Below, one piece after another: positions 32,582-57,695 of a stretch of 64,000 nucleotides of DNA. Origin of the DNA: Cycas panzhihuaensis (Eukaryota; Plantae; Cycadophyta); the NCBI GenBank assembly GCA_023213395.1, contig CM041465.1:164307741-164371740 (forward strand). The letters are read 5' to 3'. Within the stretch, counting starts at the first letter, position 1; each line of letters opens with the position of its first letter. Both the position numbers and the translations under genes were made by a program. The notes beneath the pieces were generated by a model. The model was not told the origin of the DNA, made no database searches, and was given only the letters and a program-made list of their open reading frames with translations.

Positions 32582-32947
32582 GGTTATTTGTAATACATTT
32601 AGTTTATGAGCTCGAATGAATAAATGAAGACCTTTAATGTATGAATAACATAAAGTGGACAATCAATGTTTTTCAACAAATATAAATCCCTTAATCAAGG
32701 TAAGAAAGTAATGCGATCAAATGCATATCTTTTTTTGAGACAAACGTTTTCTTTTTTCATAGAACTAAATCAATTAATGAGTCTTTTTACTTCTAAATAA
32801 TCAAAAGAGTGCTAAATGATATGCAACCTAGTTTTTAATTTGATATGATATAGAGAAACAAGGATCTTGCTCTTTTGATGCTTTAACCATGAAAATATGA
32901 AATCTAACTACTTTTAATGATACAGAGATAAATATTCAATGATATTA

Positions 32948-35900: not shown

Positions 35901-38900
35901 AGAAAATAAACAAATTGTACCTATTTAGTAAGGTAGCTTCACTTAGCTTGCAGATAGCTTGAAATCGAAAATCTAGCTTCATGTTGTAAAAAACTTTAAA
36001 AAAATCCAAACAAAGAATAATAATAGCTTTAAGAATAAATTGTTAGTGATCAATAATATAGACATAATGTTTTTGAGACAATGTAATACTTAAAAAGTTA
36101 TAAGATAAGGTTTATAAGGACTAAATAAGAAGCTAAAAATAACTAGCTTCAAACACCTACCAAATGATGCCAGAATTGAGTGAAACCTATTTTATACTGA
36201 AGAATATTGAATGACCTTTCTAATGGATTTGACTATTCAAAAAATTGATTCCTAAAACTCAAGATTTTAAAGAATAGGTGTAGAAACCCTTTTTAGGACT
36301 TAAACAGGAGCCACGAGACTGAAATACTATAAAATTCAGATTATAACTTTATAAAAAGATGTAAAGCGCTCACATATAGATTGAAAACCTTTGAATGCAA
36401 CTTATGCCAAAATATCTTGAAGAAAATACTTTAAAAAAAAGTTGAATAATGAAGAACTAGGTTTGATTAAGTACTTTAACTTCACCAGCCTGAAATATTT
36501 ACAAAACAACTTCAAATCACTTAAAATATATATATCGGTGAAGAGGGTTGAAGTCGCTTTCCAACAAAGCTAACAGTTCAAAAAATGGATATCAGATGAG
36601 AAAGTTATAATGAAAATAGTGAAGGAACCTATTTATAATTAACAAAATAGAGGTTAAAAAAATGGGTCACTTCAAGCTATTAAATCTTAATCAAAACAGC
36701 TCTAAATCTAGTAAATGACTAGTCCATGGTGAAGCTCACTGAATAACAGTCACGATGAGACTAGTTTCACAAAAAACTGCTAACCCAGTAAGGAGATAGA
36801 GTATGAAATACCCCAGTTACCCCTTTCGAGTAATAAATAAAAAATATATAAAAGGAAATTTTAATATATACTTATTAGCCCCTTTGATAGACAGTTTATG
36901 GTCATATGCTAGAGCACAAAACTAGGGGCTAATTGTTTAAAATGGGCTAACTTCTTTAAACGCTCAGATCTTACACTATATACAAATAAATTTTATTAAA
37001 AAATAAACTTTATAAAAAAAAATAAAAGTTTCGATGTTCAATTCAACTAAGCTTGAATCTTTCAAAGCTAAGGAGTAGCTAAAGCAAAATGAATGACCTT
37101 TATGTCAATATAAAATGAAGTATGCTAGATTATGGAGATGATTAGCTATCCTTTTAAAAGTAGTATATTCCTTTTAAAGTAGTAAAAAATTAAAAATCTA
37201 AAGTGTACTCTTTGCTTTAGATGATAGAAATATATGAAAATAACAAGTGTTTACTAAGAAATATAGAAAATAAACAAATTGTACCTATTTAGTAAGGTAG
37301 CTTCACTTAGCTTGCAGATAGCTTGAAGTACTGAAAATCTAGCTTCATGTTGTAAAAAACTTTAAAAAAATCCAAACAAAGAATAATAATAGCTTTAAGA
37401 ATAAATTGTTAGTGATCAATAATATAGACATAATGTTTTTGAGACAATGTAATACTTAAAAAGTTATAAGATAAGGTTTATAAGGACTAAATAAGAAGCT
37501 AAAAATAACTAGCTTCAAACACCTACCAAATGATGCCAGAATTGAGTGAAACCTATTTTATACTGAAGAATATTGAATGACCTTTCTAACGGATTTGACT
37601 ATTCAAAAAATTGATTCCTGAAACTCAAGATTTTAAAGAATAGGTGTAGAAACCCTTTTTAGGACTTAAACAGGAGCCACGAGACTGAAATACTATAAAA
37701 TTTAGATTATAACTTTATAAAAAGATGTAAAACTGCTCACATATAGATTGAAAACCTTTGAATGCAACTTATGCCAAAATACCTTGAAGAAAATACTTTA
37801 AAAAAAAGTTGAATAATGAAGAACTAGGTTTGATTAAGTACTTTAACTTCACCAGCCTGAAATATTTACAAAACAACTTCAAATCACTTAAAAATATATA
37901 TCAGTGTGAAGAGGGTTGAAGTCGCTTTCCAACAAAGCTAACAGTTCAAAAAATGGATATCATATGAGAAAGTTATAATGAAAATAGTGAAGGAACCTAT
38001 TTATAATTAACAAAATAAAGGTTGAAAAAATGGGTCACTTCAAGCCATTAAATCTTAATCAAAACAGATCTAAATCTAGTAAATGACCAGTCCACGGTGA
38101 AGCTCACTGAATAACAGTCACGATGAGACTAGTTTCACAAAAAACTGCTAACCCAGTAAGGAGATAGAGTATGAAATACCCCAGTTACCCCTTTTGAGTA
38201 ATAAATAAAAAATATATAAAAGAAAATTTTAATATATACTTATTAGCCCCTTTGATAGACAACTTATGGTCATATGCTAGAGCACAAAACTAGGGGCTAA
38301 TTGTTTAAAATGGGCTAACTTCTTTAAACGCTCAGATCTCAAACTATATACAAATAAATTTTATTAAAAAATAAACTTTATAAAAAAAAAATAAAAGTTT
38401 TGACGTTCAATTCAACTAAGCTTGAATCTTTCAAAGCTAAGGAGTAGCTAAAGCAAAATGAATGACCTTTATGTCAATATAAAATGAAGTATGCTAGATT
38501 ATGGAGATGATTAGCTATCCTTTTAAAAGTAGTATATTCCTTTCAAAGTAGTAAAAAATTAAAAATCTAAAGTGTAATATTTGCTTTAGATGATAGAAAT
38601 ATATGAAAATAACAAGTGTTTACCAAGAAATATAGAAAATAAACAAATTGTACCTATTTAGTAAGGTAGCTTCACTTAGCTTGCAGATAGCTTGAAATCT
38701 TGAAAATCTAGCTTCATGTTGTAAAAAACTTTAAAAAAATCTAAACAAAGAATAATAATAGCTTTAAGAATAAATTGTTAGTGATTAATAATATAGACAT
38801 AATGTTTTTGAGACAATGTAATACTTAAAAAGTTATAAGATAAGGTTTATAAGGACTAAATAAGAAGCTAAAAATAACTAGCTTCAAACACCTACCAAAT

Positions 38901-41900
38901 GATGCAAGAATTGAGTGAAACCTATTTCATACTGAAGAATATTGAATGACCTTTCTAATGGATTTGACTATTCAAAAAATTGATTCCTGAAACTCAAGAT
39001 TTCAAAGAATAGGTGTAGAAACCCTTTTTAGGACTTAAACAGGAGCCACGAGACTGAAATACTGTAAAACTCAGATTATAACTTTATAAAAAGATGTAAA
39101 ACTGCTCACATATAGATTGAAAACCTTTGAATGCAACTTATGCCAAAATATCTTGAAGAAAATACTTTAAAAAAAAGTTGAATAATGAAGAACTAGGTTT
39201 GATTAAGTACTTTAACTTCACCAGCCTGAAATATTTACAAAACAACTTCAAATCACTTAAAAATATATATCAGTGTGAAGAGGGTTGAACTCGCTTTCCA
39301 ACAAAGCTAACAGTTCAAAAAATGGATATCAGATGAGAAAGTTATAATGAAAATAGTGAAGGAACCTATTTATAATTAACAAAATAGAGGTTGAAAAAAT
39401 GGGTCACTTCAAGCTATTAAATCTTAATCAAAACAGCTCCAAATCTAGTAAATGACCAGTCCACGGTGAAGCTCACTGAATAACAGTCACGATGAGACTA
39501 GTTTCACAAAAAACTGCTAACCCAGTAAGGAGATAGAGTATGAAATACCCTAGTTACCCCTTTTAAGTAATAAATAAAAAATATATAAAAGAAAATTTTA
39601 ATATATACTTATTAGCCCCTTTGATAGACAGCTTATGGTCATATGCTAGAGCACAAAACTAGGGGCTAATTGTTCAAAATGGGCTAACTTCTTTAAACGC
39701 TCAGATCTCAAACTATATACAAATAAATTTTATTAAAAAATAAACTTTATAAAAAAAAATAAAAGTTTCGACGTTCAATTCAACTAAGCTTGAATCTTTC
39801 AAAGCTAAGGAGTAGCTAAAGCAAAATGAATGACCTTTATGTCAATATAAAATGAAGTATGCTAGATTATGGAGATGATTAGCTATCCTTTTAAAAGTAG
39901 TATATTCCTTTCAAAGTAGTAAAAAATTAAAAATCTAAAGTGTAATATTTGCTTTAGATGATAGAAATATATGAAAATAACAAGTGTTTACCAAGAAATA
40001 TAGAAAACAAACAAATTGCACCTATTTAGTAAGGTAGCTTCACTTAGCTTGCAGATAGCTTGAAGTACTGAAAATCTAGCTTCATGTTGTAAAAAACTTT
40101 AAAAAAATCTAAACAAAGAATAATAATAGCTTTAAGAATAAATTGTTAGTGATTAATAATATAGACATAATGTTTTTGAGACAATGTAATACTTAAAAAG
40201 TTATAAGATAAGGTTTATAAGGACTAAATAAGAAGCTAAAAATAACTAGCTTCAAACACCTACCAAATGATGCCAGAATTGAGTGAAACCTATTTCATAC
40301 TGAAGAATATTGAATGACCTTTCTAATGGATTTGACTATTCAAAAATTGATTCTCAAACTCAAGATTTCAAAGAATAGGTGTAGAAACCCTTTTTAGGAC
40401 TTAAACAGGAGCCACGAGACTGAAATACTGTAAAACTCGGATTATAACTTTATAAAAAGATGTAAAACTGCTCACATATAGATTGAAAACCTTTGAATGC
40501 AACTTATGCCAAAATATCTTGAAGAAAATACTTTAAAAAAAAGTTGAATAATGAAGAACTAGGTTTGATTAAGTACTTTAACTTCACCAGCCTGAAATAT
40601 TTACAAAACAACTTCAAATCACTTAAAAATATATATCAGTGTGAAGAGGGTTGAAGTCGCTTTCCAACAAAGCTAACAGTTCAAAAAATGGATATCAGAT
40701 GAGAAAGTTATAATGAAAATAGTGAAGGAACCTATTTATAATTAACAAAATAGAGGTTGAAAAAATGGGTCACTTCAAGCTATTAAATCTTAATCAAAAC
40801 AGCTCCAAATCTAGTAAATGACCAGTCCACGGTGAAGGTCACTGAATAACAGTCACGATGAGACTAGTTTCACAAAAAACTGCTAACCCAGTAAGGAGAT
40901 AGAGTATGAAATACCCCAGTTACCCCTTTTAAGTAATAAATAAAAAATATATAAAAGAAAATTTTAATATATACTTATTAGCCCCTTTGATAGACAGCTT
41001 ATGGTCATATGCTAGAGCACAAAACTAGGGGCTAATTGTTCAAAATGGGCTAACTTCTTTAAACGCTCAGATCTCAAACTATATACAAATAAATTTTATT
41101 AAAAAATAAACTTTATAAAAAAAAAATAAAAGTTTCGACATTCAATTCAACTAAGCTTGAATCTTTCAAAGCTAAGGAGTAGCCAAAGCAAAATGAATGA
41201 CCTTTATGTCAATATAAAATGAAGTATGCTAGATTATGGAGATGATTAGCTATCCTTTTAAAAGTAGTATATTCCTTTCAAAGTAGTAAAAAATTAAAAA
41301 TCTAAAGTGTAATATTTACTTTAGATGATAGAAATATATGAAAATAACAAGTGTTTACCAAGAAATATAGAAAATAAACAAATTGTACCTATTTAGTAAG
41401 GTAGCTTTACTTAGCTTGCAGATAGCTTGAAATACTGAAAATCTAGCTTCATGTTGTAAAAAACTTTAAAAAAATCTAAACAAAGAATAATAATAGCTTT
41501 AAGAATAAATTGTTAGTGATTAATAATATAGACATAATGTTTTTGAGACAATGTAATACTTAAAAAGTTATAAGATAAGGTTTATAAGGACTAAATAAGA
41601 AGCTAAAAATAACTAGCTTCAAACACCTACCAAATGATGCCAGAATTGAGTGAAACCTATTTCATACTGAAGAATATTAAATGACCTTTCTAATGGATTT
41701 GACTATTCAAAAAATTGATTCCTAAAACTCAAGATTTCAAAGAATAGGTGTAGAAACCCTTTTTAGGACTTAAACAGGAGCCACGAGACTGAAATACTAT
41801 AAAACTCACATTATAACTTTATAAAAAGATGTAAAACTGCTCACATATAGATTGAAAACCTTTGAATGCAACTTATGCCAAAATATCTTGAAGAAAATAC

Positions 41901-43879
41901 TTTAAAAAAAAGTTGAATAATGAAGAACTAGGTTTGATTAAGTACCTTAACTTCACCAGCCTGAAATATTTACAAAACAACTTCAAATCACTTAAAAATA
42001 TATATCAGTGTGAAGAGGGTTGAACTCGCTTTCCAACAAAGCTAACAGTTCAAAAAATGGATATCATATGAGAAAGTTATAATGAAAATAGTGAAGGAAC
42101 CTATTTATAATTAACAAAATAGAGGTTGAAAAAATGGGTCACTTCAAGCTATTAAATCTTAATCAAAACGGCTCCAAATCTAGTAAATGACCAGTCCACG
42201 GTGAAGCTCACTGAATAACAGTCACGATGAGACTAGTTTCGCAAAAAACTGCTAACCCAGTAAGGAGATAGAGTATGAAATACCCTAGTTACCCCTTTTG
42301 AGTAATAAATAAAAAATATATAAAAGAAAATTTTAATATATACTTATTAGCCCTTTGATGACGACTTATGGTCATATGCTAGAGCATAAAACTAGGGGCT
42401 AATTGTTCAAAATGGGCTAACTTCTTTAAACGCTCAGATCTCAAACTATATACAAATAAATTTTATTAAAAAATAAACTTTATAAAAAAAAATAAAAGTT
42501 TCGACGTTCAATTCAACTAAGCTTGAATCTTTCAAAGCTAAGGAGTAGCTAAAGCAAAATGAATGACCTTTATGTCAATATAAAATGAAGTATGCTAGAT
42601 TATGGAGATGATTAACTATCCTTTTAAAAGTAGTATATTCCTTTCAAAGTAGTAAAAAATTAAAAATCTAAAGTGTAATCTTTGCTTTAGATGATAGAAA
42701 TATATGAAAATAACAAGTGTTTACCAAGAAATATAGAAAATAAACAAATTGTACCTATTTAGTAAGGTAGCTTCACTTAGCTTGCAGATAGCTTGAAGTA
42801 TTGAAAATCTAGCTTCATGTTGTAAAAAACTTTAAAAAAATCTAAACAAAGAATAATAATAGCTTTAAGAATAAATTGTTAGTGATCAATAATATAGACA
42901 TAATGTTTTTGAGACAATGTAATACTTAAAAAGTTATAAGATAAGGTTTATACGGATTAAATAAGAAGCTAAAAATAACTAGCTTCAAACACCTACCAAA
43001 TGATGCAAGAATTGAGTGAAACCTATTTCATACTGAAGAATATTGAATGACCTTTCTAACGGATTTGACTATTCAAAAAAATGATTCCTGAAACTCAAGA
43101 TTTTAAAGAATAGGTGTAGAAACCCTTTTTAGGACTTAAACAGGAGCCACGAGACTGAAATACTGTAAAACTCGGATTATAACTTTATAAAAAGATGTAA
43201 AACTGCTCACCTATAGATTGCAAACCTTTGAATGCAACTTATGGCAAAATATCTTGAAGAAAATACTTTTAAAAAAAGTTGAATAATGAAGAACTAGGTT
43301 TGATTAAGTACTTTAACTTCACCAGCCTGAAATATTTACAAAACAACTTCAAATCACTTAAAAATATATATCAGTGTGAAGAGGGTTGAACTCGCTTTCC
43401 AATAAAGCTAACAATTCAAAAAATGGATATCAGATGAGAAAGTTATAATGAAAATAGTGAAGGAACCTATTTATAATTAACAAAATAGAGGTTGAAAAAA
43501 TGGGTCACTTCAAGCTATTAAATCTTAATCAAAATAGCTCCAAATCTAGTAAATGACCAGTCCATGGTGAAGCTCACTGAATAACAGTCACGATGAGACT
43601 AGTTTCACAAAAAACTGCTAACCCAGTAAGGAGATAGAGTATGAAATACCCCAGTTACCCCTTTTGAGTAATAAATAAAAAATATATAAAAGAAATTTTT
43701 AATATATACTTATTAGCCCCTTTGATAGACAGCTTATGGTCATATGCTAGAGCACAAAACTAGGGGCTAATTGTTCAAAATGGGCTAACTTCTTTAAACG
43801 CTCAGATCTCAAACTATATACAAATAAATTTTATTAAAAAATAAACTTTATAAAAAAAAATAAAAGTTTCGACGTTCAA
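32948..43879. repeat. Tandem array of 8 x ~1367-bp AT-rich units
   Basis: Unit starts (TTCAACTAAGCTT) at 32948, 34316, 35678, 37042, 38411, 39779, 41146 and 42512; near-identical; no ORF of 60 aa or more. Confidence 0.97.
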
Positions 43880-45506
43880 CGCCACCACAGAAAACATGAA
43901 GAATAGAGGAGATTTTTCGAATTACAACTAATAAGATTGCATTGTAAGTAATCAAATAAAGTTGCAGACAGATGCTAGGGATCCACACTAGTGGATCGAA
44001 CAAGGATCTCTTTAAAAATTAATTTTTTTATATAAAAAAAATAAAAAAGACGTTGATAACCAATGCACTGCCGCCAACGAGAATACCTTGAACATAGGTG
44101 ATTTAGATCGATCAGATGTAGCTAAAATGGATTAATGAAGAGTACAAACAGGTGCAGAGGCCTCTCATTGGAGAATCCAACAAATATTTTTGAAAAAAAA
44201 TATATATATATTATAATAAAATGAAAAATTATTGATACGAAGTGCATGGTCTTGGTAGATACCCAACTGATGTTCAGAGCGAGATATCTCGCTAATGGAG
44301 AGATGAAATAACAAACTGTTTTCTTCAATACTAAGAGGACTCAGCTAAAAATAACATAAGTGGTCATATGTAGTGGTTTTGATCAACTGTTAGAGAGATA
44401 GAGCCTTTTGAAATCAAGATAGCTTGTAAATCTTTAAAATAAAAATAAAATCAATTAAATTTGAAAGAAAAGCTCTAAATTTCATTAGATCTCTTCCAGA
44501 TCGATAGTGCATGATCATACACAGGCTACAAAGTATAAATAGATTGAAATTTCAAGGAAAAAAGATTTAACAAATTAATTTTTAGCTTACGGGAGTTATG
44601 GAGGGCTCACGATGTTGAGGAGGCTGTATGACTCAAGGAATGCTAAAAAATAGACTGAAATTGCTTGGTCTAACTTGTATCAAACTTGCACCCCTATCAC
44701 AAAAGAGATCTGATGAAAAAAGAAGCCAAAATGAGTAGATGAAAGAAGGGCAGTGGGGTTTCACTATAAAAAATGAATAGCCAAGCTTCCGGGAGGGAGA
44801 TCTCTTCATAGGAGTGACAAAAATCAAAACTGTCAAATTTAGTATGAAGCTGACTCAGAGATCTTCGAAATGACCGGTCACTTGATAGGATTTCGTTCAC
44901 CGTGGAGACAACACCAACTTGTAGAAGTTTAAGTTCCTTGTAAAACCTTAAAAAAATAGTAAAAAAATAATAAAAATTTATAAACTATCAAATGAAATCT
45001 TTGTATAATTTTCTCAAAGGATTGTTGGGCTAAATAAGTAGCTATTACTGCACAAATCTGAAGAAATATTGAGTAAATAGAGCATATACACCAAAAAATA
45101 GTTAAATATTTAATAAAACTATACAAAATTTATTAATAAAAACTTCATAAAATGATGAAATATTGAATGTTTAATTGATTATAGCAGTGAACTTACATAG
45201 ATCTATGAAAATATAGATTATTTTATACATATAAATAAAAAATAGTCAATTTTTTAATGAAAATAATATAAAAACTATTAATAAGCTTTATAAAAAATGA
45301 ATAAAACTAATATATTACTTTTCGTAAGTAGCTTTGATATCTGCTTCAAAACTCAATAGATCTTCTTGCTCTTAAATGAAGGAGGTCCAAAATCTATGCT
45401 CTGAGACCAAATGAAGGATTTAAAAGCATGGAGACATAGTGGAGCAATAAGCAAATAATCAAACCATTATCAAGTATGAGCATAAACCAAATATATTTAT
45501 TCAAGC

Positions 45507-45786
45507 TGTTAGGTGTAATACTTGATTCCATTAGCCCTATGTAAACTCTCTCTATCTTTTGTATTCTATATTAGAGTTATGGGCCACCTTGATATGTGTG
45601 CCACCTCTAAATAGTCCAATGGGGTTCTCTCTCTAGTGGTGAGGTTGTACTATAAGTATGTACTCTTATTTGTTCATAATTGAGTTTTGGCCAATTCTTC
45701 AACATGGTGTCTATTCTGTGTATACTTCATCTTTTTGTTGCTCACCATTAGGGTTTGATATGCTTGTTACATTACTAATCCTATCA
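45507..45786 (+). repeat. Cargo element LTR1
   Basis: TGTTAGG...CCTATCA followed by PBS TGGTATCACAGCC. Confidence 0.95.
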
Positions 45787-46707
45787 TGGTATCACAGCCC
45801 AAGGTTTAACCCTTGGAGGCCTTTCTTGCAAATCCTAGTACATGCCATTCCTGGTTTTTGAGCTTTCAAGTCTTGTAAATTTTTTGATGTGCCTGTTTGG
45901 TGACTTTGTCAAGTTGAAAATCATTTGAAGTTATATCTGATGCATATTTTGTTATGGGACTGATATCAAGTTTTGAAGGGCTATTTTGGTGTTAATGAGA
46001 GGCTGTTTTCAAGCCCATTTTGAAATTTTGTAGTTGTTTAAAGCCTGTTGATGCTGCGTAGGTGGACATCTTCTCCACATGTGGTGCCACAATAATATTA
46101 CATGCCGGCGAAAGTCCACCATATTCTGTGTGCAGATTCAACTACTGTTTAGCTATCTCCTTCACATGTCAGTGGACAAAGTGTTGTAGGAACTGTTAAC
46201 AGCAGTTGAGTGAGTGCTTCTCGCTATCCGGAAGCTAGAAGAAACTCTACTTTCAAAAGATTTACAGATTTACAGGTTATACATATATTTTGCTGATATG
46301 TACATTCTTTATGCTCAAAAATTTTGTATTCAAGGCCTTCAAATCTGGCCTATGTTCTTATGTATTTTTTATTCAAAAAAAAAAAAAAAGGAAAAATCTG
46401 TCAAATATGTTGTTGGTGCATAGCCATTGCCAGATCTGAAAAGAAAAAGACTGCAAATGAAGAGCTTCTCTATGTATGAATTAAATGACAATCTATTGCT
46501 ATGTTTTTTTTGGGTCTTTCCAAAGTTTGCCGTATGAATCTTTTCATATTGCAAGCTTCAGTTTCGTCCCATCCATTAAAGCAAAGAGACTATCTGCTCT
46601 GACTGCTTCATTTTGTTCCTCGTGCATTATATATGTCATGGGATCGATCCGAGGGGTTCTGTTTCCATCAAACCATTGTGGTGGATTTTGATCAGTTCAG
46701 TGATGTA

Positions 46708-46812
46708 ATGGCCTAGCATAGTCGGGCTTGGGCTATGTGCTTAGTATTGGTCATACTGAGCTTGTTGAGTTTGGGTGAAGCAGCTTACCAGTTCAGAGTT
46801 GGGGAAAAGGCA
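46708..46812 (+). pseudogene. Captured signal peptide + phytocyanin/early-nodulin-like N-terminus, unit 1
   Basis: MA*HSRAWAMCLVLVILSLLSLGEAAYQFRVGEKA: hydrophobic signal followed by a YQFxVG motif. Confidence 0.55.
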
Positions 46813-46883
46813 ACGGATGAAATGGAACCCTTTATGCCCTGCTTATTTCACAATGTTAATCTGGGCTTTAATCCCTCGATCAT

Positions 46884-47746
46884 ATTTCCTTTTGATTCAG
46901 GATCATCTATTAGAGTTATTTCCTCTATATTCTCCACTCCATACTTTTTCAATTCACTCCTCAAATCATCTTTTTTCCATGTCCTACAAATATTGCGCAC
47001 ATAAAGAGTTTCATTATCTTGGCTTTGTGACACCCCACATTGCTTGCCTCTCACCCATGGATTCTTGAGATCTGCGACAACCTTCTTCGCTTGTTCGATA
47101 GTTGCAAAGCAAATGAATGCAAATCCTTTATTTTTCTGCGTGAGAGAATTCTTAGCCAGTCGAACCTCAATGACTTCTCCAACCTTACTGAAAACCTTCT
47201 TCAAATCCTCTTCCACAGTGTCCTTGTCAAGCCCGCCAACAAAAATCTCAAATTCCTTTTGCTTCCTCCGCTCTTTCACAGGGGCGAGCACTTCAACATC
47301 CTGATGATGTTCTTCTCCATTGTCGTTGCCGTCTTCTTGCTACTCTTCATCGTCAACTTCCTCTTCTTCTCCTCCCTCTGCATCACCATCACCTTCTTCT
47401 CCTTCGCCGTCAACCTTTTCATCTCCTTCACCATCACCTGACTCCTCCTCATCTTCTCGCGCTTCTTCCAGCACCTCATCTGACACCTTCACTTCAGTCA
47501 GTCTGGCTTCCTCGGCTTTGAAGCCCTCTTCAGTTAATGGCTTGCCGCCATTCTCCACCGATGCTTCGACGCCTGTGCGTCGTCTGCGAGGGCCGAAACA
47601 CTAGCATTTGGGTCGGCATTGTTGAGGTCTGGAAGAGAAACATTAGCCTTGGCTTCGACGGGATTCGACCCCGTAGCCTGCACTGCCTCGACGGCCTCCA
47701 GCTTGCAAACATCAAAGAATAATGGCGACTTCGACCCTCTGCTCAT
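46884..47746 (-). pseudogene. Captured hnRNP Q/R-like multi-RRM gene fragment, unit 1
   Basis: Acidic E/D/G tract, KERRKQKEFEIFVGGLDK (RNP2), KGFAFICF (RNP1), start of RRM2 (TLYVRNICRTW); truncated before the RRM2 RNP1; stop at 47340. Confidence 0.9.
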
Positions 47747-48499
47747 GGCAGCTTCAGCTTCATACCTGCAATGGCTTCGATGCATTATCCATGGCAGCAC
47801 TCAGAGATGAAAAATGGTGACCTGGTTATCACGACACTCTACTCTTCAACCTGCAACATCCATGGCGGCGGTATCCCTCGATGATATTCTTGGCAGAACC
47901 CTAATATCTTAGGGTTATATGTTGGCATATTTTTCGACGGATGTCAAATTCTATAACAAAGGGTTAAGTTTTTTTTTTTTCTATTTGAAAAAATAAATTT
48001 AACTATATTGGATATTGCTTTTGGATCCGTCCAGCCCTTCATCACTTTAACCCCGGTCACATGGTGGGCTTAATACGACCTATTGCCAGCTCATGAAGGG
48101 GGCTAGTCCCCATTTCATCCTTTTTCAGCATTACTAAGGAGTACCTATCACATTTTTTACTGTATCTTGAGATTGGGAGGTCCGATTTCGATTCTAAATG
48201 CGTTGGATCCATAACAGAGAGAGATTTCATTTGACAAGTCATTTGACACATTTTGGAGCCGTTTTCATGGAGATTTTTAAGTTCAAAGTTATAAGTTCCT
48301 ATTTGTCTTCATTTTTTCTCAGTTTCTTTAGGCACATATTGCATTTTCAAGGCTTCTTGATGTAATGTACCCCGAATGGGGGGGATGACATGTACTATGG
48401 ACTTCTTTTTAGCTCTTGAAGAACCCATTATGATCATATTGTACTTCATTTATGAGAGAGAGTCACATGTGCTACACAAGTCACATACTATTTTTCAGT

Positions 48500-48697
48500 C
48501 ATGTAAAAATTTCTAATACTGGTTACTTTTGCCCATGTTGGCAAGTTGTTAGCCCAATGAGGCATCATGTAAAAATTTCTAATGCTAGTTATTTTTTCCC
48601 ATAGTGGCAAGTTGTTAGCCCAATGAGAAATCATGTAAAAATTTCTAATGCTAGTTACTTTTGCCCATGGTGGCAAGTTGTTAGCCCAATGAGGCAT
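48500..48697. repeat. 3 x 66-bp tandem repeat (also ~52391-52588 and ~56271-56468)
   Basis: CATGTAAAAATTTCTAAT... starts at 48500, 48566 and 48632. Confidence 0.93.
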
Positions 48698-48819
48698 CTT
48701 TTTAGCCTATGTGGCATGTTTGAGGCCATAGTACCATTGTATTTCGGGCCATTAGATGCCGAAGAAGTGCTAGTCCTATTGAGCAAGAGGTAGGACACAC
48801 TTTTAGAAGCTACTCTTGC

Positions 48820-49352
48820 CCGCCATGTGCTATTTTCCATGTGCTTTATATACATGTAGTTTCCTGCTTGCACTCCCATATAAGCAAGGGGTGGGACCTT
48901 ATACAGCTACTCTTGCCAGCTCTTGATTGATCCACGTATACATAGGGAGTTCCTACCCAACTGGCGGTTGCAGTGGCTAATAACCCACGTATTCCGGTAG
49001 ATGGACTCTACTTCATATGGGCATCAGTAGCTTTCTTATTCAGTGCAGCAGTGTTTATGATCCAGCAGACTTTTGGAGACTCCTGTCATGTGCCATGTGC
49101 CATGTGCCATGTGTTTCTTATATATATATTTTCTTGCTTGCACTCCCATATGAGCAAGGGGTGGGACCTTATACAGCTACTCTTACCAGCTCTTGATTGC
49201 TCCACGTATATAAAGGGAGTTCCTACCCAACTGGCGGTTGCAGTGGCTGATAACCCATGCATTCTGGTAGATGGACTCCACTTCATATAGACTTCAGCAA
49301 CTTTCTTATTCTGTGTAGCAGCGGTTATGATCCAGCAGCCTTTTAGAGGCTT
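48820..49352. repeat. 2 x ~270-bp direct repeat upstream of the PPT (present in all three units)
   Basis: GCTTGCACTCCCATAT...GGAGACT block recurs with a 270-bp period (48871 / 49141). Confidence 0.9.
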
Positions 49353-49405
49353 GAACTTATCATTGAAGTGATGACATTTATGTAATTGACTATTACAGGG
49401 GGTAA

Positions 49406-49685
49406 TGTTAGGTGTAATACTCAATTTCATTAGTCCTATGTAAACTCTCTCTATCTTTTGTATTCTATATTAGAGTTGTGGGTCACCTTGATATGTGTGC
49501 CACCTCTAAATAGTCCAATGGGGTTCTCTCTCTAGTGGTGAGGTTGTACTATAAGTATGTACTCTTATTTGTTCATAATTGAGTTTTGGCCAATTCTCCA
49601 ACATGGTGTCTATTCTGTGTATACTTCATCTTTTTGTTGCTCACCATTAGGGTTTGATATGCTTGTTACATTACTAATCCTAACA
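49406..49685 (+). repeat. Cargo element LTR2 (shared)
   Basis: Preceded by PPT AGGGGGTAA, followed by the perfect PBS TGGTATCAGAGCC. Confidence 0.95.
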
Positions 49686-50607
49686 TGGTATCAGAGCCCA
49701 AGGTTTAACACTTGGAGGCCTTTCTTGCAAATCCTAGTACATGTCATTCCTGGTTTTTGAGCTTTCAAGTCTTGTAAATTTTTTGATGTGCCTATTTGGT
49801 GACTTTGTCAAGTTGAAAATCATTTAAAGTTATATTTGATGCATATTTTGTTATGGGACTGATATCAAGTTTTGAAGGGCTATTTTGGTGTTAATGAAAG
49901 GCAGTTTTCAAGCCTATTTTGAAATTTTGTAGTTGTTTAAAGTTTGTTGATGCTGCGTAGGTGGACATCTTCTCCACATGTGGTGCCACAATAATATTAC
50001 ATGCCGGTGAAAGTCCACCATATTCTGTGTGCAGATTCAACTACTGTTTAGCTATCTCCTTCGCATGTCAGTGGACAAAGTGTTGTAGGAACTGTTAACA
50101 GCAGTTGAGTGAGTGCTTCTCGCTATCTAGAAGCTAGAAGAAACTCTACTTTCAAAAGATTTATAAATTTATAGGTTATACATATATTTTTGTTGATATG
50201 TACTTTCTTTATGCTCAAAAATTTTGTATTCAAGGCCTTCAAATTTGGCCTATGTTCTTATATATTTTTTATTCAAAAAAAAAAAAAAAGGAAAAATCTG
50301 CCAAATATGTTGTTGGTGCATAGCCATTGTCATATCTGAAAAGAAGAAGACTGCAAATGAAGAGCTTCTCTATGTATGAATTAAATGACAATCTATTGCT
50401 ATGTTTTTTTTGGGTCTTTCCAAAGTTTACCGTATGAATCTTTTCATATTGCAAGCTTCAGTTTCGTCCCATCCATTAAAGCAAACAGACTATCTGCTCT
50501 GACCGCTTCATTTTGTTCCTCGTGCATTATGAGTGTCATGGGATCGATCCGAGGGGTTCTGTTTCCATCAAACCTTTGTGGTGGATTTTGATCAGTTCAG
50601 TGATGTA

Positions 50608-50712
50608 ATGGCCTGGCATAGTCGGGCTTGGGCTATGTGCTTGGTATTGGTCATACTGAGCTTGTTGAGTTTGGGTGAAGCAGCTTACTAGTTCAGAGTT
50701 GGGGAAAAGGCA
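50608..50712 (+). pseudogene. Captured signal peptide/phytocyanin-like N-terminus, unit 2
   Basis: MAWHSRAWAMCLVLVILSLLSLGEAAY*FRVGEKA. Confidence 0.55.
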
Positions 50713-50783
50713 ACAGATGAAATGGAACCCTTTATGCCCTGCTTATTTCATAGTGTTAATCTGGGCTTTAATCCCTCAATCAT

Positions 50784-51646
50784 ATTTCCTTCTGATTCAG
50801 GATCATCTATTAGAGTTATTCCCTCTATATTCTCCACTCCATACTTTTTCAATTCACTCCTCAAATCATCTTTTTTCCATGTCCTACAAATATTGCGCAC
50901 ATAAAGAGTTTCATTATCTTGGCTTTGTGACACCCCACATTACTTGCCTCTCACCCATGGATTCTTGAGATCTGCGACAGCCTTCTTCGCTTGTTCGATA
51001 GTTGCAAAGCGAATGAATGCAAATCCTTTATTTTTCTGCGTGAGAGAATTCTTAGCCAGTCGAACCTCAACGACTTCTCCAACCTTACTGAAAACCTTCT
51101 TCAAATCCTCTTCCACAGTGTCCTTGTCAAGCCCGCCAACAAAAATCTTAAATTCCTTTTGCTTCCTCCGCTCTTTCACAGGGGCGGGCACTTCAACATC
51201 CTGATGATGTTCTTCTCCATTGTCGTTGCCGTCTTCTTGCTACTCTTCATCGTCAACTTCCTCTTCTTCTCCTCCCTCTGCATCACCATCACCTTCTTCT
51301 CCTTCGCCGTCAACCTCTTTATCTCCTTCACCATCACCCGACTCCTCCTCATCTTCTCGCGCTTCTTCCAGCACCTCATCTAACACCTTCACTTCGGTCT
51401 GTCCGGCTTCCTCAGCTTTGAAGCCCTCTTCAGTTAATGGCTTGTCGCCATTCTCCGTGGATGCTTCGACGCCTATGCGTCGTCTGCGAGGGCTGAAACA
51501 CTAGCATTTGGGTCGGCATTATTGAGGTCTGGAAGAGAAACATTAGCCTTGGCTTCGATGAGATCCGACCCCATAGCCTGCACTGCCTCGATGGCCTCCA
51601 GCTTGCAAACATCAAAGAATAATGGCGGCTTCGACCCTCTGCTCAT
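50784..51646 (-). pseudogene. Captured hnRNP Q/R-like RRM fragment, unit 2
   Basis: As unit 1, with KGFAFIRF and an extra stop at 50940. Confidence 0.9.
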
Positions 51647-53282
51647 GGCAACTTCGACTTCATACCTGCAATGGCTTTGATGTATTATCCATGGCAGCGC
51701 TCAGAGATGAAAAATGGTGACCTGGTTATCATGGTGCTCTACTCTTTAACCTGCAACATCCATGGCAGCGGCGGCCCTCGATGATATTCTTGGCAGAACC
51801 CTAATATCTTAGGGTTATATGTTGGCATATTTTTTGACGGATGTCAAATTCTATAACAAAGGGTTAAGTTTTTTTTTTCCTATTTGAAAAAAAAAATTTA
51901 ACTATATTGGATATTGCTTTTGGATCCGTCCAGCCCTTCATCACTTTAACCCCGGTCACATGGTGGGCTTAATATGACCTATTGCCAGCTCATGAAGGGG
52001 GCTAGTCCCCATTTCATCCTTTTTTAGCATTACTAAGGAGTACCTATCACATTTTTTTACTGTATCTTGAGATTGGGAGGTCTGATTTCAGTTCCGTCTG
52101 TTGCGTTGGATCCGTAATAGAGAGAGATTTCATATGACACATTTTGGAGCTGTTTTCATGGAGATTTTTAAGTTCAAAGTTATAATTTCCTATTTGTCTT
52201 CATTTTTTCTCAGTTTCTTTAGGCACATATTGCATTTTCAAGGCTTCTTGATGTAATGTACCCCGAATGGGGGGGATGACATGTACTATGGACTTCTTTT
52301 TAGCTCTTGAAGAACCCATTGTGATCATATTATACTTCATTTATGAGAGAGAGTCACATGTGCTACATAAGTCACATACTATTTTTCAGTCATGTAAAAA
52401 TTTCTAATACTGGTTACTTTTGCCCATGTTGGCAAGTTGTTAGCCCAATGAGGCATCATGTAAAAATTTCTAATGCTAGTTATTTTTGCCCATGGTGGCA
52501 AGTTGTTAGCCCAATGAGGAATCATGTAAAAATTTCTAATGCTAGTTATTTTTGCCCATGGTGGCAAGTTGTTAGCCCAATGAGGCATCTTTTTAGCCTA
52601 TGTGGCATGTTTGAGGCCATAGTACCATTGTATTTCTGGCCATTAGATGTCGAAGAAGTGCTAGTCCTATTGAGCAAGAGGTAGGATACACTTTTAGAAG
52701 CTACTCTTGCCTGCCATGTGCTATTTGCCATGTGCTTTATATACATATAGTTTCCTGCTTGTACTCCCATATAAGCAAGGGGTGGGACCTTATACAGCTA
52801 CTCTTGCCAGCTCTTGATTGATACACATACACAGAGGGAGTTCATACCCAACTGGCAGTTGCAGCAGCTAATAACCCATGCATTCCGGTAGATGGACTCT
52901 ATTTCATATGGACATCAGTAGCTTTCTTATTCAGTGCAGCAGTGTTTATGATCCAACAGGCTTTTGGAGACTTATGTCATGTGCCATGTGTTTCTTATAT
53001 ATATTTTTTCTTGCTTGCACTCCCATATGAGCAAGGGGTGGGACCTTATACAGCTACTCTTGCCAGCTCCTGATTGCTCCACGTATATAAAGGGAGTTCC
53101 TACCCAACTGGCGATTGCAGCGGCTGATAACCCATGCATTTCCGTAGATGGACTCCACTTCATATAGACTTCAGCAACTTTCTTATTCTGTGTAGCAGCG
53201 GTTATGATCCAGCAGCCTTTTGGAGACTTGAGCTTATCATTGAAGTGATGACATTTATGTAATTGACTATTACAGGGGGGAA

Positions 53283-53562
53283 TGTTAGGTGTAATACTCA
53301 ATTTCATTAGTCCTATGTAAACTCTCTCTATCTTTTGTATTCTATATTAGAGTTATGGGTCACCTTGATATGTGTGTCACCTCTAAATAGTGCAATGGGG
53401 TTCTCTCTCTAGTGGTGAGGTTGTACTATAAGTATGTACTCTTATTTGTTCATAATTGAGTTTTGGCCAATTCTCCAACATGGTGTCTATTCTGTGTATA
53501 CTTCATCTTTTTATTGCTCACCATTAGGGTTTGATATGCTTGTTACATTACTAATCCTAACA
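53283..53562 (+). repeat. Cargo element LTR3 (shared)
   Basis: PPT before, PBS TGGTATCACAGCC after. Confidence 0.95.
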
Positions 53563-54482
53563 TGGTATCACAGCCCAAGGTTCAACCCTCGGAGGCCTTT
53601 CTTGCAAATCCTAGTACATGTCATTCCTGGTTTTTGAGCTTTCAAGTCTTGTAAATTTTTTGATGTGCCTGTTTGGTGACTTTGTCAAGTTAAAAATTAT
53701 TTGAAGTTATATCTGATGCATATTTTGTTATGGGACTGATATCAAGTTTTGAAGGGCTATTTTGGTGTTAATGAGAGGTTGTTTTCAAGCCCATTTTGAA
53801 ATTTTGTAGTTGTTTAAAGCTTGTTGATGCTGCGTAGGTGGACATCTTCTCCACATGTGGCGCCACAATAATATTACATGACGGTGAAAGTCCACCATAT
53901 TCTGTGTGCAGATTCAACCACTGTTTAGCTATCTCCTTCGCATGTCAGTGGACAAAGTGTTGTAGGAACTGTTAACAGTAGTTGAGTGAGTGCTTCTCAC
54001 TATCTGGAAGCTAGAAGAAACTCTACTTTCAAAAGATTTATAAATTTATAGGTTATACATATATCTTTGCTGATATGTACTTTCTTTATGCTCAAAAATT
54101 TTGTATTCAAGGCCTTCAAATCTGGCCTATGTTCTTATGTATTTTTTATTCGAAAAAAAAAAAAAGGAAAAATCTGCCAAATATGTTGTTGGTGCATAGC
54201 CATTGGCAGATCTGAAAAGAAGAAGACTGCAAATGAAGAGCTTCTCTATGTATGAATTAAATGACAATCTATTGCTATGTTTTTTTGGGTCTTTCCAAAG
54301 TTTGCCGTATGAATCTTTTCATATTACAAGCCTCAGTTTTGTCCCATCCATTAAAGCAAACAGACTATCTGCTCTGACCGCTTCATTTTGTTCCTCGTGC
54401 ATTATGAGTGTCATGGGATCGATCCGAGGGGTTCTGTTTCCATCAAACCTTTGTGGTGGATTTTGATCAGTTCAGTGATGTA

Positions 54483-54779
54483 ATGGCTTGGCATAGTCAG
54501 GCTTGGGCTATGTGCTTGGTATTGGTCATACTGAGCTTATTGATTTTGGTTGAAGTAGCTTACCAGTTCAGAGTTGGGGAAAAGGCAACGGATGAAATGG
54601 AACCCTTTATGCCCTACTTATTTCACAGTGTTAATCTGGGCTTTAATCCCTCGATCATATTTCCTTCCGATTCAGGATCATCTATTAGAGTTATTTCCTC
54701 TATATTCTCCACTCCATACTTTTTCAATTCACTCCTCAAATCATCTTTTTTCCATGTCCTACAAATATTGCACACATAA
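54483..54779 (+). CDS. Open chimeric ORF (98 aa): captured signal peptide/phytocyanin-like start fused to antisense-RRM sequence; expression unknown
   Basis: MAWHSQAWAMCLVLVILSLLILVEVAYQFRVGEKATDEMEPF... open to 54779 (part of ORF 54408-54779). Confidence 0.25.
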   Translation: MAWHSQAWAMCLVLVILSLLILVEVAYQFRVGEKATDEMEPFMPYLFHSVNLGFNPSIIFPSDSGSSIRVISSIFSTPYFFNSLLKSSFFHVLQILHT

Positions 54780-55521
54780 AGAGTTTCATTATCTTGGCTT
54801 TGTGACACCCCACATTGCTTGCCTCTCACCCATGGATTCTTGAGATCTGTGACAGCCTTCTTTGCTTGTTCGATAGTTGCAAAGTGAATGAATGCAAATC
54901 CTTTATTTTTCTGCGTGAGAGAATTCTTAGCCAGTCGAACCTCAACGACTTCTCCAACCTTACTGAAAACCTTCTTCAAATCCTCTTCCACAGTGTCCTT
55001 GTCAAGCCCGCCAACAAAAATCTCAAATTCCTTTTGCTTCCTCCGCTCTTTCACAGGGGCGGGCACTTCAACATCCTGATGATGTTCTTCTCCATCATCG
55101 TTGCCGTCTTCTTGCTACTCTTCATCGTCAACTTCCTCTTCTTCTCCTCCCTCTGCATCACCATCACCTTCTTCTCCTTCGCCGTCAACCTCTTCATCTC
55201 CTTCACCGTCACCTGACTCCTCCTCATCTTCTCGTGCTTCTTCCAGCACCTCATCTGACACCTTCACTTTGATCTGTCCAGCTTCCTCGGCTTTGAAGCC
55301 TTCTTCAGTTAATGGCTTTCTGCCATTCTCCGTTGATGCTTTGACGCCTTTGCGTCATCTGCGAGGGCCAAAACACTAGCATTTGGGTCGGCATTGTTGA
55401 GGTTTGGAAGAGAAACATTAGCCTTGGCTTTGACAGGATCTGACCCCATAGCCTGCACTGCCTTGACGGCCTCCGTCTTGTAAACATCAAAGAATAATGG
55501 CAGCTTCAACCCTCTGCTCAT
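54659..55521 (-). pseudogene. Captured hnRNP Q/R-like RRM fragment, unit 3
   Basis: ORF 54623-55066 with IFVGGLDK and KGFAFIHF, plus the upstream acidic tract. Confidence 0.9.
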
Positions 55522-57171
55522 GGCAGCTTCGACTTCATACCTGCAATGGCTTCGATGCATTATCCATGGCAGTGCTCAAAGATGAAAAATGGTGACCTGG
55601 TTATCATGGCGCTCTACTCTTTAACCTACAACATCCATGGCGGCGGCGGCCCTCGATGATATTCTTGGCAGAACCCTAATATCTTAGGGTTATATGTTGG
55701 CATATTTTTTGACAGATGTCAAATTCTATAACAAAGGGTTAAGTTTTTTTTTTTCTATTTGAAAAAATAAATTTAACTATATTGGATATTACTTTCGGAT
55801 CCGTCCAGCCCTTAATCACTTTAACCCCGGTCACATGGTGGGCTTAATACGACCTATTGCCAGCTCATGAAAGGGGCTAGTCCCCATTTCATCCTTTTTC
55901 AGCATTACTAAGGAGTACCTATCATATTTTTTACTGTATCTTGAGATTGGGAGGTCCGATTTCAGTTAAAATTGCGTTGGATCCTAGCAGAGAGATTTCA
56001 TTTGACAGGTCATTTGACACATTTTGGAGCTGTTTTCATGGAGATTTTTAAGTTTAAAGTTATAAGTTCCTATTTGTCTTCATTTTTTCTCAGTTTCTTC
56101 AGGCACATATTACATTTTCAAGGCTTCTTGATGTAATGTACCCCGAATGGGGGGTATGACATGTACTATGGACTTCTTTTTAGCTCTTGAAGAACCCATT
56201 GTGATCATATTGTACTTCATTTATGAGAGAGAGTCACATGTGCTACACAAGTCACATACTATTTTTCAGTCATGTAAAAATTTCTAATACTGGTTACTTT
56301 TGCCCATGTTGGCAAGTTGTTAGCCCAATGAGGCATCATATAAAAATTTCTAATGCTAGTTATTTTTGCCCATGATGGCAAGTTGTTAGCCCAATGAGGA
56401 ATCATGTAAAAATTTCTAATGCTAGTTATTTTTGCCCATGGTGGCAAGTTATTAGCCCAATGAGGCATCTTTTTAGCCTATGTGGCATGTTTGAGGCCAT
56501 AGTACCATTGTATTTCCGGCCATTAGATGCCGAAGAAGTGCTAGTCCTATTGAGCAAGAGGTAGGACACACTTTTAGAAGCTACTCTTGCCTGCCATGTG
56601 CTATTTGACATGTGCTTTATATACATATAGTTTCCTGCTTGCACTCCCATATAAGCAAGGGGTGGGACCTTATACAGCTACTCTTGCTAGCTCTTGATTG
56701 ATCCACGTATACAGAGGGAGTTCCTACCCAACTGGCAGTTGCAGCGGCTAATAACCCATGCATTCTGGTAGATGGACTATACTTCATATGGACATCAGTA
56801 GCTTTCTTATTCAGTGCAGCAGTGTTTATGATCCAGCAGACCTTTGGAGACTCTTGTCATGTGCCATGTGCCATGTGTTTCTTATATATATATATTTTCT
56901 TGCTTGCACTCCCATATGAGCAAGGGGTGGGACCTTATACAGCTACTCTTGCCAGCTCTTGATTGCTCCACGCATACAAAGGGATTTCCTACCCAACTGG
57001 CGGTTGCAGCAGCTGATAACCCATGCATTCCAGTAGATGGACTCCACTTCATATAGACTTCAACAACTTTCTTATTCTGTGTAGCAGCGGTTATGATCCA
57101 GCAGCCTTTTGGAGACTTGAGCTTATCATTGAAGTGATGACATTTATGTAATTGACTATTATAGGGGGGAA

Positions 57172-57451
57172 TGTTAGGTGTAATACTCAATTTCATTAGT
57201 CCTATGTAAACTCTCTCTATCTTTTGTATTCTATATTAGAGTTGTGGGTCACCTTGATATGTGTGCCACCTCTAAATAGTCCAATGGGGTTCTCTCTCTA
57301 GTGGTGAGGTTGTACTATAAGTATGTACTCTTATTTGTTCATAATTGAGTTTTGGCCAATTCTCCAACATGGTGTCTATTCTGTGTATACTTCATCTTTT
57401 TGTTGCTCACCATTAGGGTTTGATATGCTTATTACATTACTAATCCTAACA
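57172..57451 (+). repeat. Cargo element LTR4
   Basis: PPT before, TSD CAAGC after, no PBS. Confidence 0.95.
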
Positions 57452-57695
57452 CAAGCCATGTTTAAAAGTGCGTACATATTTTTAAATGAAGGTGGTGTCT
57501 AAAGATACTAGGGTTTGTCACCCCAATAAATCTATAGTTTGAAGGAGGAGGGAAACCTCTTCAATCTCCATAATTTAAAATATATTAAAATAATACTTAA
57601 CTAAAGTAACACTTAACCTTGCCTTACTTACCTTCACATGTGTGCACTCACATGTGTAAATGGTGGGAGTAGGGTGATGAACATTAACCCCAACA

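Follow-up and report, generated by a model that had tools for sequence, protein, structure and literature searches.

In rice, Arabidopsis, almond and cotton, LTR retrotransposons often occur as tandems bordered by target-site duplications (TSDs) (Morales-Diaz et al. 2025, Mob DNA, PMC11899658). In these tandems LTRs alternate with internal regions, the inner LTRs are shared and a single 5-bp TSD is present, and each has been read as one insertion; whether unequal recombination or a complex insertion gave rise to them was left unresolved in that study. Elements without coding capacity can be arranged in the same way. A survey of sugar beet reported 97 tandem copies in 38 non-autonomous families, with TSDs in 73 cases and up to 21 LTRs (PMC13570524). 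In this material and in the Cassandra arrays, non-autonomous tandems have between 3 and 21 LTRs, have mostly kept their TSDs and have been ascribed to unequal LTR-LTR recombination (PMC13570524; PMC7215508; PMC4079214). Capture of gene fragments by LTR elements has its own precedents. In maize, 425 elements carry gene fragments, most of them in the unclassified class, and capture is commonest among unclassified, non-autonomous families (PMC2774510). Transduced sequences are usually sense-oriented (PMC7264820).

The locus that we describe here, from Cycas panzhihuaensis, is a clean and fully annotated meeting of these two known processes, gene-fragment capture and shared-LTR tandem growth. It lies in a window of 64 kb, by which we mean the whole stretch of DNA that was analysed. 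The array resembles the tandems of Morales-Diaz et al. in its LTR-bounded alternation, its shared inner LTRs and its single 5-bp TSD, but all 28 curated rice tandems encode retrotransposon protein domains, and most of them are Gypsy (Tekay) (PMC11899658), whereas the Cycas array lacks coding capacity and contains cargo from the host. With the sugar beet tandems and TRIMs (PMC13570524; Cassandra arrays, PMC7215508, PMC4079214) it shares a non-autonomous nature and the presence of both PBS and PPT. However, its unit of 4.2 kb is far bigger than a classical TRIM, which in the strict sense is shorter than about 1 kb, and gene-fragment cargo is not reported in the sugar beet tandem paper (PMC13570524). 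Like Bs1 and other gene-fragment-carrying LTR elements, the Cycas element has a host fragment and is missing full coding capacity; unlike Bs1, in which three fragments are fused in sense in an expressed chimeric ORF, it has one fragment that can be demonstrated, and this is antisense and a pseudogene (PMC13317346; PMC2774510; PMC3726574). The Bs1-like combination of fragments from several genes in a sense chimeric ORF is therefore not what we find, the one fragment being antisense and containing stops. Like a LARD, the Cycas element has a long internal domain without coding function (about 3.6 kb here) between its LTRs and would need proteins in trans. Multi-kb LTRs characterise the type elements of LARDs. 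The Cycas LTRs are just 280 bp, and a length of more than 4 kb is given for LARDs (PMC13570524).

In plants, tandem arrays with shared LTRs are commonplace and well documented, as are gene fragments captured by non-autonomous LTR elements; the Cycas locus is less usual only in the antisense orientation of its cargo. The original prediction had named this combination the best candidate in the window for an undescribed system, a claim that is overtaken by published tandem LTR retrotransposon arrays with TSDs (PMC11899658; PMC13570524) and published gene-fragment capture (PMC2774510; PMC13317346); the locus gives no pointer to a new kind of system. Its annotation is nevertheless useful for describing the transposable elements of the Cycas genome, since annotation often mistakes arrays like this one for several elements or for satellites, and it provides a test locus for the question of whether tandem LTR retrotransposons form before or after integration.

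Structure of the shared-LTR array

The array spans exactly 45507-57451 and consists of three head-to-tail units of ~4.18 kb with inner LTRs in common, in the order LTR-internal-LTR-internal-LTR-internal-LTR. This agrees in full with the original prediction of four 280-bp LTRs, three PBSs, three PPTs and one CAAGC TSD. On the plus strand, the LTRs (LTR1, 45507-45786; the shared LTR2, 49406-49685; the shared LTR3, 53283-53562; LTR4, 57172-57451; 280 bp each) alternate with internal region 1 (45787-49405; 3619 bp), internal region 2 (49686-53282; 3597 bp) and internal region 3 (53563-57171; 3609 bp). The entire array is flanked by a single TSD, CAAGC, at 45502-45506 on the left and 57452-57456 on the right, its 5 bp falling within the 4-6 bp range that we looked for. 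With internal regions alternating with shared LTRs, an LTR at each end and one TSD, the locus has the structure by which a tandem LTR retrotransposon is defined. The inner LTRs meet PPT and PBS without extra bases and inner TSDs are absent; the array is thus one insertion. Plain segmental tandem duplication outside LTR biology was considered and rejected because the repeat phase breaks off precisely where the LTRs end, and the PBS, PPT and TSD are all where they should be.

All four LTRs start with TGTTAGG and have TG..CA termini, LTR2-4 ending in CCTAACA and LTR1 in CCTATCA. They are 96.4-99.6% identical, pairs differing at 1-10 positions with zero indels. A PBS of the form TGGTATCA[G/C]AGCCCAAGG directly adjoins each of LTR1-3 with no spacer, and in all three places the pattern TGGTATCAGAGC is found at 0-1 mismatch. 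The PBS of unit 2, TGGTATCAGAGCCCAAGG (49686-49703, plus strand), matches this pattern exactly, while those of units 1 and 3 (45787-45804 and 53563-53580, plus strand) have the same sequence, TGGTATCACAGCCCAAGG, with one mismatch. Matches to the PBS pattern numbered 12, compared with a mean of 3.8 expected from shuffled sequence. We take the pattern to complement the 3' end of tRNA-iMet, which is established knowledge rather than a reading from a tRNA of the Cycas panzhihuaensis genome. Short PPT-like runs, A(C/T)AGGGGG(G/T)AA, occur on the plus strand immediately 5' of LTR2 (ACAGGGGGTAA, 49395-49405), LTR3 (ACAGGGGGGAA, 53272-53282) and LTR4 (ATAGGGGGGAA, 57161-57171). With LTRs, PBS, PPT and TSD all present, the element is by structure an LTR retrotransposon. 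The iMet-type PBS, the short LTR and the TGTT..AACA ends are consistent with membership in Copia but are not diagnostic of it.

No ORF of at least 150 aa was found anywhere in the 64-kb window, and a Pfam search with 17 ORF pieces of unit 1 and two of units 2-3 gave RRM_1 as the sole family, in line with the expectation of a 3.6-kb internal region lacking gag and pol. Coding capacity for gag, protease, reverse transcriptase, RNase H and integrase is absent, which makes the element non-autonomous (LARD/TRIM-like); it is a decayed non-autonomous plant LTR retrotransposon without genes of its own. Searching the remaining 52 kb of the window gave no match to a further family copy or an autonomous partner. 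Rfam, tRNA and inverted-repeat scans of one unit found nothing, and no SINE or MITE inside it could be shown. The internal region does contain a genuine GC-richer block (0.40-0.47 vs 0.33-0.38), which had also been predicted, as well as two tandem repeats on the plus strand, a 66-bp sub-repeat in about 4-5 copies (48433-48764) and an approximately 270-bp duplication with 85-87% matches (48822-49348) that predates the triplication. A minus-strand ORF of the latter was tried as an eL24-like second cargo on the basis of a PDB match to plant eL24 (E 0.4-0.9). It was rejected as noise; the ORF had no match in Pfam or ESM Atlas, and its unit 2 counterpart matched an unrelated protein, not eL24, at an equal E level.

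The antisense RRM cargo

The host-derived cargo is an hnRNP-Q-like RRM gene fragment comprising RRM1 and the start of RRM2. It lies on the minus strand at 46887-47330 in internal region 1, and at 50787-51230 and 54662-55105, again on the minus strand, in units 2 and 3. The fragment is uninterrupted and contiguous, comes from one gene, is antisense to the element and covers residues about 181-325 of plant proteins of about 700 aa. Pfam identified RRM_1 in the cargo ORF (E 3e-21), and tblastn gave collinear 143-148-aa matches at 58-73% identity to plant RRM proteins of 560-800 aa (E 1e-53 to 1e-64), so homology to a cellular gene outside the transposable elements is clear. A Wollemia protein is 72-73% identical to the cargo over about 145 residues, and a Magnolia relative carries the name hnRNP Q-like. 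A protein homologue search with the 147-aa RRM ORF returned short proteins of other plants that were 61-78% identical; none among the homologues found was a near-identical annotated copy.

The captured piece may extend further toward the N terminus. An in-frame acidic tract runs on from the RRM fragment to about 47600, as would fit the architecture of the homologues, and the ATG of the captured gene is possibly near 47746. It is this tract that argues for an extension beyond 47330, a phmmer comparison of the extension with 190 homologues having given no significant match. A premature stop in the tract, just upstream of the RRM, is common to all units and is therefore older than the triplication. 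Between units dN/dS is ~1 over the cargo, and unit 2 has acquired an additional stop. Given the common premature stop and a dN/dS of ~1, we regard the cargo as a pseudogene.

These results alter what had been proposed for the GC-richer block, namely that fragments of unrelated host genes abut one another there, some in one orientation and some in the other, and that their carrier is a non-autonomous LTR retroelement that shuffles host exons. The non-autonomous LTR retroelement with host-derived cargo stands. Derivation of the cargo from several genes does not, as all that can be demonstrated is one unbroken antisense stretch from one gene, and the remaining ORF pieces yielded nothing. Exon shuffling fares no better, since the one fragment is a decaying pseudogene and no chimeric ORF is supported. 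Two sense-strand candidates were also set aside: an ORF described as a phytocyanin-like signal peptide (46717-47001, and its unit-3 copy) gave no Pfam match at E<=1, and a Ser/Pro-rich ORF mirrors the acidic tract on the opposite strand.

Divergence of the units and origin of the array

The internal units lie at equal distances from one another (K2P 0.041, 0.044 and 0.046), any two of them being separated by 143-159 substitutions and 6-8 indels (about 4%). Of the substitutions, 70, 65 and 80 were private to the respective units, a star-like pattern. Private changes affect ~2% of each unit and are mainly of the methylation type; with substitutions polarised by the per-column majority state among the three internal regions, 135 of 215 are C>T or G>A, 51 being at CpG and 36 at CHG. 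Since changes of this type predominate, the array is taken to be old and probably cytosine-methylated. LTR1 has seven private differences from LTR2-4, scattered along the full LTR, and at four of the seven it is LTR2-4 that have the C>T-type state in common, which requires either gene conversion or chance. LTR1 and LTR4 differ at 9 sites and LTR2 and LTR4 at 1.

We favor, with reasonable rather than strong confidence, a scenario in which one non-autonomous LTR element that had already acquired its RRM cargo inserted once, grew to three units by post-insertion recombination and then decayed neutrally. Before insertion, the internal region would have taken up, in antisense, the 5' portion of a gene for an hnRNP-Q-like RRM protein (the cargo is known at this locus alone), and the 66-bp and approximately 270-bp tandem repeats would likewise have been gained by then. 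Insertion of the single ~4.18-kb element, with its 280-bp LTRs, iMet-type PBS and short PPT, would have been followed by unequal recombination, the reciprocal of solo-LTR formation, with two rounds near in time giving three units. Thereafter the units would have decayed under cytosine methylation while LTR2-4 were kept alike, probably through gene conversion. Against this scenario, growth through one crossover after another would often make two of the units closer to each other than to the third, and such a pair is not observed.

The data also do not separate post-insertion recombination from insertion of a ready-made concatemer, because one TSD and a star-like pattern are possible under either origin. 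A trimer could have been made before integration, by template switching of co-packaged RNAs, cDNA recombination or read-through of a circular or tandem copy, and inserted whole; a pre-integration mechanism has been proposed (PMC1950507), and the origin was left open in the larger survey (PMC11899658). The perfect TSD round the array and the exact LTR/PBS and PPT/LTR junctions agree with this possibility, as does the equidistance of the internal units, which is expected if they were once identical simultaneously. Moreover, the greatest similarity is not between the two outermost LTRs, an observation that has been used in rice to argue for a pre-integration origin (bioRxiv 10.1101/452573). However, a virus-like particle holds two RNAs, so that a trimer requires extra jumps, and unequal recombination shortly after insertion yields an identical picture. 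We consider a pre-integration trimer a tentative second choice to post-insertion recombination.

Composition of the cargo and mobility of the element

Two homopolymer runs on the plus strand bear on how the cargo was acquired. An A15 run (46375-46389) is kept in three of three units (A15, A15 and A13) and is possibly the poly(A) tail of an RNA piece in sense orientation. A T12 run (47969-47980; A12 on the minus strand), which is kept in all units just past the 5' end of the antisense fragment, is possibly that of a second antisense RNA piece. Read along the plus strand, the antisense piece proceeds from about codon 325 toward the mRNA 5' end and is followed by the T12 run. An order of this kind might be produced if the cargo were a train of RNA-derived pieces joined by end-to-end reverse-transcriptase template jumping in plus-strand synthesis, in which case the T12 run could have been copied from the poly(A) tail of a second RNA; we think this improbable. 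The antisense 5'-terminal mRNA fragment is a small mechanistic clue to the capture route. If antisense 'Pack-LTR' capture were recurrent in the genome, transcription from the LTRs through the triplicated cargo would yield RNA antisense to the parent RRM gene, and this RNA could feed small-RNA regulation of that gene.

The same runs might mark further RNA-derived pieces in both orientations, as would suit a still-active system, mobilised by copia elements, in which several host exons are shuffled and locally amplified, the cis signals are fit for trans-mobilisation and new chimeric genes could arise. Also in favor of such a system are the recognisable PBS, PPT and LTR ends, the exact iMet-type PBS of unit 2 and the presence of one host fragment. 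We nevertheless judge it very unlikely. The sole demonstrable host piece is antisense, truncated and interrupted by stops, with a dN/dS of about 1; the sense ORFs over the cargo are mirror images with no Pfam match; neither family copy nor partner turned up in the rest of the window; and the local amplification reflects ordinary exchange between LTRs rather than anything specific to the cargo. Present-day mobility is doubtful given the private, mostly methylation-type changes in each unit and a mismatched PBS in two of the three. The least credible explanation is an assembly artefact in which copies of one element, dispersed or allelic, were joined by mistake, for although 3.9-kb repeats are a classic site of assembly errors, the divergence between the units makes them three distinct sequences, neither collapsed nor duplicated, and the junctions are exact, with one matching TSD closing the array.

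A second tandem array, unrelated to the first and built on a 1.37-kb repeat, is located 1.4 kb upstream of the LTR array, which fits a neighborhood with unequal exchange.

Structure and coding capacity of the array

A direct-repeat scan of 44-59 kb revealed a period of approximately 3.89 kb that is present three times, and its initial 280-300 bp occur a fourth time. Exact-motif searches placed four 280-bp LTRs at 45507-45786 (LTR1), 49406-49685 (LTR2), 53283-53562 (LTR3) and 57172-57451 (LTR4), and pairwise alignment showed 1-10 differing positions and zero indels. All four start with TGTTAGG and they end in CCTAACA (LTR2-4) or CCTATCA (LTR1). A primer-binding site (PBS), TGGTATCA[G/C]AGCCCAAGG, sits directly 3' of LTR1-3 and has a pattern that we take to be the complement of the 3' end of plant initiator tRNA-Met. 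With up to two mismatches this 12-nt pattern occurs 12 times in the window versus 3.8 expected, and the best three matches window-wide are the three LTR/internal junctions. A polypurine tract (PPT)-like A(C/T)AGGGGG(G/T)AA lies directly 5' of LTR2-4, and CAAGC is found on each side of the array as a target-site duplication (TSD). Any tandem repeat of 3.07 units would display a "terminal repeat"; a generic duplication can be rejected here because the repeat phase stops exactly at the TG..CA termini with PBS, PPT and TSD in place, and for the same reason we consider this to be an array of LTR elements. The repeat scan and motif searches thus bear out the original prediction of four LTRs, three PBSs, three PPTs and one CAAGC TSD.

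The internal regions measure 3619, 3597 and 3609 bp in units 1, 2 and 3. No ORF of at least 150 aa exists on either strand of the whole 64-kb window, in agreement with the earlier expectation that an intact gag/pol would be missing, and when 17 ORF pieces of unit 1 plus two from units 2 and 3 were scanned, RRM_1 (E 3e-21) was the sole Pfam family. As these scans of internal ORF pieces found no gag, protease, RT, RNase H or integrase, the element is non-autonomous. The window as a whole is gene-poor and composed of decayed repeats. It includes a degenerate Copia-type gag remnant at 1416-1790 (+; Retrotran_gag_2, E 9e-13), which is not a partner by sequence because it has no detectable DNA similarity to the LTR or internal region of the array.

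An A15 run (46375-46389) and a T12 run (47969-47980) are retained in all units. Further downstream are a 66-bp sequence repeated in tandem some 4-5 times (48433-48764) and a tandem duplication of approximately 270 bp (48822-49348), the latter with 85-87% matches and, therefore, much older than the triplication. Plant LTR elements are known for carrying tandem repeats close to the 3' end of their internal region (PMC7004042). A 7-bp microsatellite, CATGTGC, lies at the junction of the ~270-bp repeats (49087-49113 and equivalents in units 2 and 3); its copy number differs among units, units 2 and 3 being shorter by 14 and 7 bp.

The captured RRM gene fragment

The RRM_1 match falls on a minus-strand ORF of unit 1 (46848-47291) that, in a full-library phmmer search, is collinear with residues ~180-330 of plant RRM proteins of 560-870 aa. 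The relatives that carry a name come from Wollemia nobilis (a transcript), Welwitschia (a protein) and Magnolia sinica (a "heterogeneous nuclear ribonucleoprotein Q-like" protein); for what appears to be a seed-plant host, the closest sampled homologue is that of the conifer (Wollemia). When these relatives were compared with the array by tblastn, each unit gave a single uninterrupted minus-strand match of 143-148 residues (E down to 2e-64; 72-73% identity to the Wollemia protein), at 46887-47330, 50787-51230 and 54662-55105 in units 1, 2 and 3. The fragment covers RRM1 and the beginning of RRM2, within which homology ends abruptly at ..DDPESKGN|MIEGL, a position that lacks a GT; we read this as a junction left by capture and not as the edge of an intron. 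Upstream, an acidic Glu/Asp/Gly tract in frame with the ORF reaches ~47600. It fits the architecture of the homologues, in which an acidic tract is located directly ahead of RRM1; homology of the tract itself had no significant statistical support. There is a possible start codon near 47746, and a 5' UTR-like stretch may extend to ~47960. A telo-box-like motif, AACCCTAA, is present on the minus strand at 47880-47905, in the presumed 5' UTR/upstream part. Motifs of this type are commonly located close to where plant genes of the translation/RNA-binding apparatus begin, and this one would fit a fragment reaching the transcription start of its parent.

The GC-richer block had been attributed to abutting pieces of unrelated host genes in both orientations. 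The block is real and consists essentially of the single antisense RRM fragment: a Ser/Pro-rich sense ORF (47308-47601) is rejected as a second gene, as it is the acidic tract read on the opposite strand. No second host gene was demonstrable in the unit by Pfam, protein, Rfam, tRNA and inverted-repeat searches, the last three of which found nothing; a "phytocyanin-like" sense ORF was without support in Pfam, and an eL24-like match (E 0.4) was rejected as the unit-2 copy failed to reproduce it.

The cargo is a pseudogene. In all three units the upstream acidic tract is interrupted by an in-frame stop (..DDEE*QEDG..), which therefore predates the triplication, and unit 2 has an extra stop within RRM1. 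Differences between units are 6-8 non-synonymous versus 0-2 synonymous (dN/dS ~0.8-1 or undefined).

Age and origin of the three units

The internal regions are equidistant (K2P 0.041, 0.044 and 0.046) and carry 70, 65 and 80 private substitutions evenly distributed along the unit, a star-like pattern of about 2% per lineage. C>T or G>A accounts for 135 of 215 polarised changes (51 of these at CpG and 36 at CHG), a spectrum characteristic of repeats that are methylated and silenced. At the commonly used plant rate of 1.3e-8 per site per year, 2% corresponds to roughly 1.5 My, and to several-fold more at the slower gymnosperm rates, as an order of magnitude only. The LTRs are without any CpG and are less diverged than the internal regions. 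The number of differing sites is 1 for LTR2-LTR4, 4 for LTR2-LTR3 and 5 for LTR3-LTR4; LTR1 is set apart by 8-10 differences from each of the others and by 7 private states over its full length. About 6.6 differences per pair are expected even at the non-CpG, non-CHG rate, so that the identity of LTR2 and LTR4 is marginally too high (P about 0.01, Poisson estimate). The excess is most simply explained by gene conversion among LTR2-4, and large plant genomes are reported to have high rates of conversion within elements (PMC5751070).

Given the one TSD and the exact inner junctions, the array is one insertion. Both routes in the literature are compatible with the array data. We lean toward the one in which unequal recombination in place, after a single insertion, would have produced three units. 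Our reasoning for this is that: (i) the alternative, a multimer formed during or before reverse transcription and integrated whole (PMC1950507; bioRxiv 10.1101/452573; PMC11899658), requires more than two packaged RNAs to make a trimer; (ii) the reciprocal product of recombination, the solo LTR, is ubiquitous and (iii) an unrelated head-to-tail array 1.4 kb upstream (32796-44100) suggests that unequal exchange takes place in this region. Multimer integration, which we regard as less likely, has in its favor that the units are equidistant and that the most similar LTRs are not the two outer ones. The upstream array has 8-9 copies, mostly 94-100% identical, of a ~1367-bp monomer; it has a very high A/T content, with A enriched on the + strand, contains no PBS-like motif and no ORFs, and resembles a satellite with a long monomer or a macrosatellite.

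Precedents and capture of the cargo

There is ample precedent for both aspects of this array, and the original prediction of an undescribed system is not upheld: shared-LTR tandem arrays and gene-fragment capture are already common in plants. Tandem LTR retrotransposons, whose shared inner LTRs and TSD our array has, are reported to be frequent and polymorphic, with 266 in a rice pangenome and others in Arabidopsis, almond and cotton (PMC11899658). Non-autonomous elements of sugar beet include 97 tandem copies from 38 families with 3-21 LTRs, 73 of them with a TSD (PMC13570524), and Cassandra TRIMs form tandem arrays too (PMC7215508, PMC4079214). A host fragment inside an LTR element is shared with Bs1, the classic case (PMC13317346), and with 425 maize elements representing at least 189 captures, mostly in the unclassified class (PMC2774510); hundreds to thousands are indicated for rice and sorghum (PMC3726574, as cited in PMC13317346). 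Our array belongs to both kinds simultaneously, and no special mechanism is required for the two to coincide. It is a real and well-formed array, and an ordinary one.

Only the orientation of the cargo is less usual, being antisense in contrast to the sense-oriented cargo of classical transduction (PMC7264820). On the + strand of the element the fragment reads from ~codon 325 to the 5' end of the mRNA. Such a fragment would result if RT switched to a co-packaged host mRNA while synthesising the plus strand, and the T12 run right after the fragment could be a copy of the poly(A) tail of a further RNA. Alternatively, a piece of cDNA may have been inserted at a break in a master copy, which would explain the orientation as well.
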